Sequence record: OP557969.1
Direction: 5' to 3' (one strand)
DNA length: 64,000 nt
Part shown: positions 51,828 to 54,914 of the stretch, in pieces
How positions within the stretch are numbered: position 1 is the stretch's first letter
Layout of the letters: every line of letters starts with the position of its first letter
Made by a program: the position numbers and the translations under genes
Notes under the pieces: model-generated
Databases searched by the model: none
The model's input: only the letters and a program-made list of their open reading frames with translations
Told to the model about the DNA's origin: nothing

Positions 51828-51992
51828 ATGACGCATGAAGAATGGATGAATGACATTAATTTTAGATATGCAGGTATCGGTAACTGGAGAAAGTATCATT
51901 GGGAAATCATATCAGACCCAGCAGAATACGATAAACTTATGAATCATGAAGTGTATCCGTGGTTCTTTATTGAAATAATGGTACGATTATGA
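51828..51992 (+). CDS. MTHxEW-family microprotein (54 aa), tandem copy 1
   Basis: MTHEEWMNDINFRYAGIGNWRKYHWEIISDPAEYDKLMNHEVYPWFFIEIMVRL. Confidence 0.7.
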   Translation: MTHEEWMNDINFRYAGIGNWRKYHWEIISDPAEYDKLMNHEVYPWFFIEIMVRL

Positions 51993-52149
51993 CACATGAA
52001 GAATGGATGAATGACATTAATTTTAGATATTCGGGTATCGGTAAATGGCTAAAGTATCATTGGGAATTCATTTCAGAGCCACATCTGTATGATAAACTTA
52101 TCAACGATTCTGCATATAAAATGTACTTAATTGAACTACTGGTACGAAT

Positions 52150-52153
<4 letters not shown>
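51989..52153 (+). CDS. MTHxEW-family microprotein (54 aa), tandem copy 2
   Basis: MTHEEWMNDINFRYSGIGKWLKYHWEFISEPHLYDKLINDSAYKMYLIELLVRI. Confidence 0.7.
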
Positions 52154-52322
<169 letters not shown>

Positions 52323-52325
52323 AAG

Positions 52326-52770
<445 letters not shown>

Positions 52771-52798
52771 GTATCTTAATAACAGAAGGTATATTGAA

Positions 52799-53038
52799 AT
52801 GAGTAAGTATTTTGTGAGTTATAGTTATAATGTATCACGAAAGATTCCACGTGGTGACGGAATGGGATGGTCTTATGATGCATATACTTTAAATGAGTCA
52901 TGTATCATCGAATTAAAAGAAAAAGACCTTGACATTTTAAAAATCAAACAATATATTCTTGATGTTGAATTGGCACATCGTACTGATATCTATCCAGATG
53001 TAAATAACATCAGCATCTTAGTACTAACCAAAGTATAA
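52799..53038 (+). CDS. Hypothetical protein
   Basis: Track ORF 52769..53038; GAAGG RBS before ATG 52799. Confidence 0.65.
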   Translation: MSKYFVSYSYNVSRKIPRGDGMGWSYDAYTLNESCIIELKEKDLDILKIKQYILDVELAHRTDIYPDVNNISILVLTKV

Positions 53039-53044
53039 GATAAA

Positions 53045-53078
<34 letters not shown>

Positions 53079-53084
53079 GAATTC

Positions 53085-53425
53085 CACAATCAGACGTATA
53101 TGGTGTAAGTTACGTCGATGCAATCCAGAACAAGATCTCTGGTACTCTAGGAAGTGGTTAATGTTAACCTAGACGGGTTTGATAATTGGACGATAGGCAA
53201 TTATTACTTGACTAGCAGGTTTAAACTAGAGGTGACTATCCTTCACCAAACTGGAAAACCGGATGGACTTTTATTTAAAAGGGTAAGGCGTGGAAATATG
53301 TTTACAGTAGTTGCTTTTAGTAGCCTGTACGCCCCACGTCAAGGTAGCCGAAAGGCAAGTTAAAACGGGTGGTTATAAAGCTGAATTAACAGCGGCGTTT
53401 AAAAGCGTCACCATCCATTTTTTTT
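53085..53425 (+). ncRNA. Candidate ~340-nt structured ncRNA
   Basis: Own promoter, at least ten helices, GAAA tetraloop, possible kissing loops, terminal three-way junction and U tract, no RBS-backed ORF. Confidence 0.65.
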
Positions 53426-53441
53426 AATTAAAGTTGGTGAT

Positions 53442-54080
<639 letters not shown>

Positions 54081-54153: not shown

Positions 54154-54678
<525 letters not shown>

Positions 54679-54700: not shown

Positions 54701-54914
<214 letters not shown>

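Follow-up and report, generated by a model that had tools for sequence, protein, structure and literature searches.

A promoter-to-terminator unit in the tRNA region of a jumbo coliphage joins two separable structured RNA modules

The DNA analysed here, referred to as the window, is a stretch of 64,000 nucleotides from sequence record OP557969.1, and derives from an E. coli phage, a jumbo myovirus that belongs to the 121Q/PBECO4 group (Asteriusvirus); all coordinates are window positions unless another locus is named. Seven tRNA genes, located between 51636 and 56038 and on the + strand throughout, constitute its tRNA region. Within this region, the stretch 53085-53425 had been characterized in a preliminary description as a promoter-driven and highly structured RNA, and this holds: -35 and -10 elements are found, the fold covaries, and the seven tRNAs lie around it. 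In BLAST comparisons, the stretch matches Escherichia phage ph0011 at 100% identity and about 25 other isolates at 97-99%. Its promoter (Table 1) scores 11/12 and is expected to start transcription at about 53084-86; the tRNA at 53844 starts 7 nt past the -10 of its own promoter copy. The identical 29-mer promoter is found at 53050, at 53809 (before tRNA-Ser) and at 54701 (before tRNA-Ser/Met), and further copies with a 16-nt spacer are located at 52327 and 52739.

The region harbors several other features of note. Each of the five copies of this one strong promoter lies upstream of a single small gene, and in the strain represented by sequencing runs X2 and X13 positions 52738-53048 are absent, corresponding to recombination or deletion between two promoter copies. 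Three tandem paralogous 54-aa ORFs (51828-52314), which share the start MTHEEWM and give no Pfam match, immediately follow tRNA-Arg. A tRNA-Ser call at 54740-54831, equipped with its own copy of the repeated promoter, has the unusual anticodon ACT (A34). Finally, ORF 54154..54678 encodes NUMOD4 and HNH_3 domains of the homing-endonuclease type within the tRNA array, and could plausibly have helped adjoining small-RNA genes to spread laterally.

From promoter to terminator, the flagged stretch forms a single transcription unit composed of two independent non-coding RNA modules, A and B (Table 1). It had previously been taken for a single RNA of ~340 nt, a view that does not survive comparison with relatives, which carry A (~185 nt) and B (~140 nt) separately. 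Only 53080-53266, corresponding to module A, is common to unrelated phages in BLAST searches, and complete module B is restricted to Asteriusvirus and Alcyoneusvirus records and the metagenomic contig L027. In phage EJP2, the promoter is followed by A and then directly by tRNA-Ser, with no B in between; in JNE01, B sits directly downstream of the promoter without A; and in RaK2, L027 and L031 (a RaK2-like metagenomic phage) a full promoter is placed between A and B. Phage phAPEC6 retains the promoter along with the initial 36 nt of A, lacks 53116 to ~53439 and resumes at 53440. The promoter is kept in 8 Asteriusvirus records, phAPEC6 among them, in which A and B are undetectable by BLAST, the deletion itself having been seen in phAPEC6, the one examined. 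Since there are relatives with just A, with just B and with neither of them, we consider A and B to be separate genes. Both are dispensable: they have been lost naturally while the phages stay viable. In the window, the two modules share one promoter and one terminator, and within this phage they may persist as a single 340-nt RNA.

Table 1. Coordinates of the promoter, the two RNA modules and their structural elements in the window
Feature	Position	Strand	Description	Support
Sigma-70-type promoter	53050..53078	+	-35 TTGACT 53050-55, 17-nt spacer, TG-extended -10 TATAAT 53073-78	
Module A	53084..53268	+	~185 nt, seven helices and three pseudoknots	covariance model R1, covariation
PK1	53084..53157	+	5' leader CCAC 53084-87 with GTGG 53154-57 in P3 loop	88% paired
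P1 hairpin	53089..53119	+	53089-98/53111-19, A53092 bulged	all 9 pairs change on both sides
P2 hairpin	53125..53142	+	length varies, absent in L015	4/5 pairs covary
P3 hairpin	53147..53172	+	53147-51/53168-72, loop holds PK1 3' strand	5/5 pairs covary
Conserved junction CGGG	53174..53177	+	CGG invariant, final G nearly so	
P4 hairpin	53181..53205	+	53181-88/53198-205	covariation count
H-type pseudoknot, abuts P4	53206..53229	+	S1 53206-10/53216-20, S2 53212-15/53226-29	
P6 hairpin GGTGA/TCACC	53231..53247	+	7-nt loop	100% paired, 2 pairs covary
PK2	53238..53268	+	P6 loop 53238-41 with 3' tail 53265-68	97% paired
P7 short hairpin CTGG/CCGG	53251..53262	+	weak, lost in Aeromonas copies	86% paired
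A/U-rich linker between modules	53269..53283	+	promoter or tRNA at same position in relatives	
Module B	53284..53425	+	~140 nt	own promoter in JNE01, RaK2, L031, L027
B1 bulged hairpin	53287..53340	+	outer 53287-93/53334-40, then 53300-01/53331-32, 53303-07/53325-29, 53310-14/53320-24	
GNRA (GAAA) tetraloop hairpin	53347..53356	+		near-invariant; one G-C to G-U change
Three-way junction	53367..53416	+	closing stem 53367-73/53410-16; hairpins 53380-83/53390-93, 53394-98/53405-09	
T8 tract	53418..53425	+	presumed transcript end	

Because folding energy alone is weak for module A (z = -0.6 against shuffled sequence, compared with -3.0 for module B and -1.9 for the whole 341 nt), the case for it rests on comparison between phages. 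Covariance model R1, built on a hand-specified nested structure, finds 23 copies at 123-224 bits and two divergent copies at 23 bits; the 25 matches, 21 of them distinct, were realigned, and 53 proposed pairs were counted. Standard pairs occupy 91.9% of cells, compared with 78.1% in column shuffles (none of 500 reaches the observed value) and 22-39% when the 3' partners are slid, bearing in mind that an alignment fitted to the nested helices favours those helices. The pseudoknot helices, which are outside the R1 model, are still 97-100% paired (PK1 88%). Both-sided changes affect 34 of the 53 pairs, against a shuffle mean of 19.0 and 10-16 with the partners slid, and some of these counts repeat inherited changes because the family is small, comprising about ten lineages. 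Taken together with the evidence on module B given below, A and B are very probably genuine structured RNA genes.

All motifs and helices quoted in the preliminary description are present where it placed them. Its GACGTA/TACGTC, CCAGA/TCTGG, CTAGG/CCTAG, ATAATTG/CAATTAT and GGTGA/TCACC helices correspond to P1, P2, P3, P4 and P6, respectively, and gain support from covariation; the three pseudoknots that define module A were absent from its helix list. The kissing interaction that it had proposed between GATAG and CTATC (53192-96/53236-40) is not supported: this pairing is formed in 66% of cases, no better than in shuffles, 58 of 500 of which reach it; the P6 loop changes together with the 3' tail, not with the P4 loop. 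The latter is a near-invariant 9-nt loop, GACGATAGG (= GACGAUAGG), and the P1 loop carries the motif G-R-Y-G. In the H-type pseudoknot, S1 and S2 are 99% and 100% paired, with two pairs changed on both sides in each, and loop 3 (53221-25) is A-rich. PK2 shows the pair types GC 8, AU 6 and UA 14, CG 6; the window itself has an A.C mismatch at 53238/53268, and this pair is restored in the strains of runs X2 and X13, where 53237/38 read A and G. Of the three pseudoknots, PK1 is the weakest. It appears in five sequence forms (CCAC/GTGG, CCTC/GAGG, AGCAC/GTGCT, CTACA/TGTAG and AACTCAT/ATGAGTT), and since the complementarity of leader and loop is not significant in any single sequence, it rests on positional covariation. 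Both termini of module A thus lie within pseudoknots, the 5' end in PK1 and the 3' end in PK2, and the pseudoknotted core contains about 40 invariant bases.

Several further interactions of module A were considered and discarded. A pairing of GTTTG in J3/4 with CAAAC (53247-51) shows no correlated changes in an alignment inspected by eye. The UGGY of the P1 loop does not qualify as a T-box-like partner of the tRNA NCCA end, as Aeromonas copies read GACG; P6 is no mimic of an anticodon arm, given that U33 and a purine at 37 are not kept and that its loop pairs with the tail; and the invariant GAGGU is not a Shine-Dalgarno sequence, being buried in S2 and P6 with no start codon downstream.

Module A is present in Asteriusvirus, Alcyoneusvirus, the T4-like Bragavirus, the T5-like Novosibvirus and one Stephanstirmvirinae phage, as well as in Aeromonas Ishigurovirus phages and metagenomic contigs. 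Every copy resides inside a tRNA array, on the tRNA strand and in an unannotated gap. Where tRNAs flank it, the first conserved bases of A are found 1-5 nt past the tRNA CCA end and the next tRNA follows within 10-90 nt; the remaining copies have a tRNA-type promoter upstream. In BLAST comparisons, identity to the A of the window is ~92% in the Bragaviruses PM2 and Pm5461 and in the unclassified T4-like Morganella phage vB_Mm5, 86% in Bragavirus vB_SdyM_006 and 84% in T5-like Novosibvirus Proteus phages, with weaker matches in Klebsiella phage KP13-16 and Aeromonas phage avDM6. Across the enterobacterial clade, A is 72-97% identical among four unrelated phage taxa and the flanking DNA is unalignable, and it is because of this high identity between taxa whose flanks do not align that we regard A as laterally transferred. 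Deeper lineages are 35-60% identical. Homing endonuclease genes are located near several of the arrays, such as a segD-like gene beside A in vB_SdyM_006 and an HNH gene in RaK2. The metagenomic locus L043 contains two diverged copies on the minus strand (2099-2287 and 2416-2611) that are 70% identical and have a tRNA between them. A copy scoring 23 bits in L015/L019 (a 259-kb viral contig and an 866-kb metagenome contig) directly follows a tRNA and lacks P2 and P6/PK2.

How widely is module A distributed? Exact-pattern scans, run over IMG/VR, JGI/ENA metagenomes and a set of 185,579 genomes and then filtered with the covariance model, yield a family of about ten lineages, so far in phages only; none was detected on bacterial chromosomes in the 185,579 genomes. 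BLAST returned no copy from 5,426 complete E. coli genomes and 72,556 PLSDB plasmids, BLAST with the divergent copies of KP13-16 and L007 revealed no further lineages, and an additional pattern scan of large collections contributed zero new members. Pattern-scan matches on human-gut contigs (L020-L074, an identical recurring sequence), at Pseudomonas loci and in L013, L014 and L018 proved to be false positives. Divergent members have probably been missed, because the large collections were scanned by exact patterns.

Turning to module B, RNAalifold analysis of six copies gives B1, the GAAA hairpin and the three-way junction followed by T8, with compensatory change in five pairs; those in B1 include the L027 copy. 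A B1-like hairpin in Kuraviruses, read by eye, adds three more compensatory changes. One of these phages, vB-EcoP-XT18 (locus L077), has ~650 nt without annotated gene or Rfam match at ~1150-1800, in which the hairpin homologous to B1 occupies 1501-1561. The GGCGT/ACGCC helix of the preliminary description is indeed there, and is better drawn as the 7-bp GGCGTGG/CCACGTC (53287-93/53334-40); its GCC-GAAA-GGC hairpin is present and nearly devoid of variation (Table 1). The three-way junction closed by GGGTGGT/ACCATCC, together with the U tract, stands as described, with 97.5% of cells paired and six pairs changed on both sides among 10 copies. Model R2 finds 12 distinct copies of the junction across the homologous loci examined and the window. 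They are positioned after B1, before A in RaK2-type phages and directly past tRNAs in RaK2, L031 and EJP2, and a T-rich tract lies downstream of most of them. As in a canonical terminator, a U tract (T8, separated by one A) lies directly behind a stable stem (53367-73/53410-16); the element is a branched junction rather than an unbranched hairpin and is not called by a consensus terminator scan. We read the three-way junction as a putative reusable branched terminator or 3'-end cap that may serve several units of the array.

Known RNA families do not account for either module. Against Rfam 15, searched with the gathering score as well as with E up to 10, the window contains only tRNAs and chance matches, in keeping with the earlier remark that no tmRNA, RNase P or group I/II intron motif could be recognized; searches of five to seven homologous loci at E up to 0.1 or 0.05 give nothing for A or B, and among the Rfam models without a match to A or B are those of tmRNA, RNase P RNA, group I/II introns, 6S RNA and Y RNA (YrlA). 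The same runs recovered the tRNAs and also a group I intron (2460-2692, 104 bits) that lies within the L031 tRNA region. The tRNA array of KP13-16 (L004) has a sub-threshold YrlA (Y RNA-like) match at 950-1056 (39.7 bits, E 8.5e-6) and a weak match to the tmRNA model at 1633-1708. R1 does not match PA5oct ncRNA001/002 (L110) or the Kuravirus non-coding gap. Literature searches returned no account of a module A RNA. Neither Rfam nor the literature searched contains the A family, its fold or the reusable junction terminator, and the kind of element, orphan structured RNAs embedded in phage tRNA arrays, is already known.

To our knowledge, the non-tRNA RNAs known in phage tRNA arrays are few: T4 species 1 and 2, ROOL/GOLLD and theta ribozymes. 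The likeness to T4 species, GOLLD and ROOL RNAs drawn in the preliminary description fits with regard to genomic context, but does not extend to homology with any of them. The T4 species 1 and 2 RNAs (rnaC and rnaD) are small stable RNAs which, like A, are encoded inside a phage tRNA cluster, on the tRNA strand and beside a tRNA; yet R1 has zero matches at E up to 1 in the T4 rnaC/rnaD locus (L012), inspection by eye shows no likeness in sequence, and rnaC appears by eye to end in a tRNA-like T-arm, whereas A has three pseudoknots and no tRNA-like domain. ROOL and GOLLD share with A an orphan status, a high degree of structure and a frequent location near phage tRNA genes, but they measure 400-800 nt and are multimeric, whereas A measures ~185 nt and is not matched by their Rfam models; their association with tRNA arrays is mentioned in 10.1101/2024.12.08.627333. 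Non-coding transcripts defined by RNA-seq are also abundant in PA5oct, a jumbo phage related to 121Q/RaK2 (PMC7318152), but these are not homologous to A, lie outside tRNA arrays and have no comparative structure model.

Assembled contigs of public sequencing runs provide a view of expression, with DNA carry-over being possible. Four RNA libraries yield contigs that overlap the unit in part, which shows its presence in RNA libraries and nothing more. One of them covers A and not B, ending at 53261 followed by adapter sequence; we do not take this as a mapped 3' end, as another adapter junction sits at an uninformative site. In L027, the minus strand at ~600-770 holds a third unit with its own promoter, which measures ~170 nt, has no ORF and separates module A from a tRNA; a 20-bp long-range helix closes it, and it may be another structured RNA.

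How might modules A and B act? We lean, if only slightly, towards the view that they are two independent, stable, trans-acting non-coding RNAs. We envision a scenario whereby A is made like a tRNA, either from its own copy of the tRNA promoter or by being cut from a polycistronic tRNA precursor. RNase E prefers A/U-rich sequence, and the RNases of the host that process tRNAs might release A by RNase E-type cuts in the A/U spacer past the CCA end and by RNase P cleavage at the next tRNA. PK1 would then lock the 5' end and PK2 the 3' end, with P4, the H-type pseudoknot and P6 stacking continuously in between, and the resulting RNA would be compact and nuclease-resistant and might accumulate as a stable species. 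Conceivably, those unpaired bases of A that are invariant (CGGG, the loop GACGAUA, and UGAC, GCAG and GAGGU around the pseudoknot) form a binding surface by which A works in trans, as an accessory factor for host takeover or counter-defence that binds a protein or small ligand in the manner of a decoy or sponge. We infer this processing route, the stability, the action in trans and the type of partner from the architecture of the module and its surroundings. A decoy or sponge for a host factor is the most attractive guess, because A has a patchy accessory distribution in translation/counter-defence arrays, and we would place its likelihood somewhere between improbable and, at best, possible. 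It is also conceivable, albeit rather improbable, that A is a highly expressed, tRNA-like-made RNA counter-defence or takeover device which has been moved between unrelated phage families by homing endonucleases and whose pseudoknotted pocket sequesters a host immune signal or effector or has a new catalytic activity on tRNA; a cyclic-nucleotide second messenger and a tRNA-targeting nuclease are examples of candidate targets. B would be a separate small RNA made up of the bulged hairpin, the GNRA hairpin, the reusable three-way junction and the U tract.

Could the stretch instead encode a small protein, or owe its conservation to events at the level of DNA? Two ORFs are open in the window, a GTG ORF of 69 aa (53154..53363) and a 31-aa ORF (53077..53172), and several GenBank records have hypothetical proteins annotated here. 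However, the 31-aa ORF starts within the -10 region, with an ATG that tRNA-flanked copies lack, and in 121Q, where this ORF is annotated as gp129, it has an internal stop. The 69-aa ORF is interrupted in most relatives, by stops in PM2, RaK2 and others and by frameshifts in several more, and it bridges two modules that occur apart; conservation does not follow this frame, as had been considered in the preliminary description. Moreover, substitutions in stems are compensatory. Judged by these comparisons of reading frames, the stretch is non-coding, and a protein product is hardly credible. Very improbable, too, is the notion that conservation reflects nothing but DNA mobility, that is, hitchhiking with homing endonucleases or a recombination hot spot devoid of RNA function. 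Homing endonuclease genes do reside nearby (54154..54678 in the window; also in vB_SdyM_006 and RaK2), and 90% identity between unrelated phage families suggests recent lateral transfer, but hitchhiking does not yield both-sided compensatory changes in 34 pairs, nor does it explain why three pseudoknots are kept at 35-60% identity.

For A, the chief competing explanation is a ribozyme acting in cis. By self-cleavage or processing, it might release the upstream tRNA at its 3' end or generate the 5' end of A itself, a role that has been proposed for the HDV-like theta ribozymes of gut phages. The strand of PK1 begins 1-5 nt past the CCA in every tRNA-flanked copy of A, and theta ribozymes, which like A are structured RNAs starting a few nt past a phage tRNA 3' end, are classed as tRNA-associated if that end is at most 5 nt from the cleavage site (PMC10879173); the pseudoknotted core with its ~40 invariant bases is ribozyme-like as well. 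This spacing holds for tRNA-flanked A, whereas Asteriusvirus (including the window), EJP2 and L027 have a promoter and no tRNA upstream and yet keep the full core. In addition, A does not have the HDV-like topology, a nested double pseudoknot of P1, P1.1, P2 and P3 with a catalytic C, but places the 3' strand of PK1 inside the P3 loop; there is no match to an HDV-type Rfam model, nor to any Rfam ribozyme model at E up to 10. At 185 nt, A is three times the length of a theta ribozyme, and the RNases of the host already trim tRNA trailers; theta ribozymes are found in phages of Bacteroidota and Bacillota, A in those of gamma-proteobacteria. On this analysis, a ribozyme appears unlikely. Alternatively, B or the A-B unit may be a cis-regulatory leader or attenuator, in which the junction terminator controls read-through into ORF 53442..53816, a proposal that we consider doubtful. 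B closes with a terminator-like stem and T8 positioned 16 nt upstream of this ORF, and an ORF is close behind B in the window, JNE01, RaK2 and L027. But although an ORF always follows B, these ORFs are mutually unrelated, and for this reason we favour a stand-alone small RNA over a leader. The same junction also follows tRNAs and precedes A with no ORF behind it, phAPEC6 expresses the same ORF without A or B, and no conserved antiterminator pairing is seen. A conserved class of downstream genes, as would be expected of a riboswitch or attenuator, is not observed for either module: A is followed by tRNAs or promoters in other phages and B by the unrelated ORFs.

Stable RNAs acting in trans thus remain our preferred reading of A and B, and they place the finding in a wider context. 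Phage tRNA arrays are increasingly viewed as counter-defence islands, and the T4 species 1 and 2 RNAs have, as far as we know, gone unexplained for 50 years. With A, the RNAs of such arrays gain a family that is compact, has a fold with good support and has clearly been transferred laterally among jumbo, T4-like and T5-like phages infecting enterobacteria and Aeromonas. The junction terminator and the layout of one promoter per RNA aid annotation where the region is now left blank or filled with hypothetical proteins, and the fold of A is a good target for structure determination. Since culture collections hold strains with A (121Q, PBECO4 and ph0011) and without it (phAPEC6 and G17), its function is directly testable.
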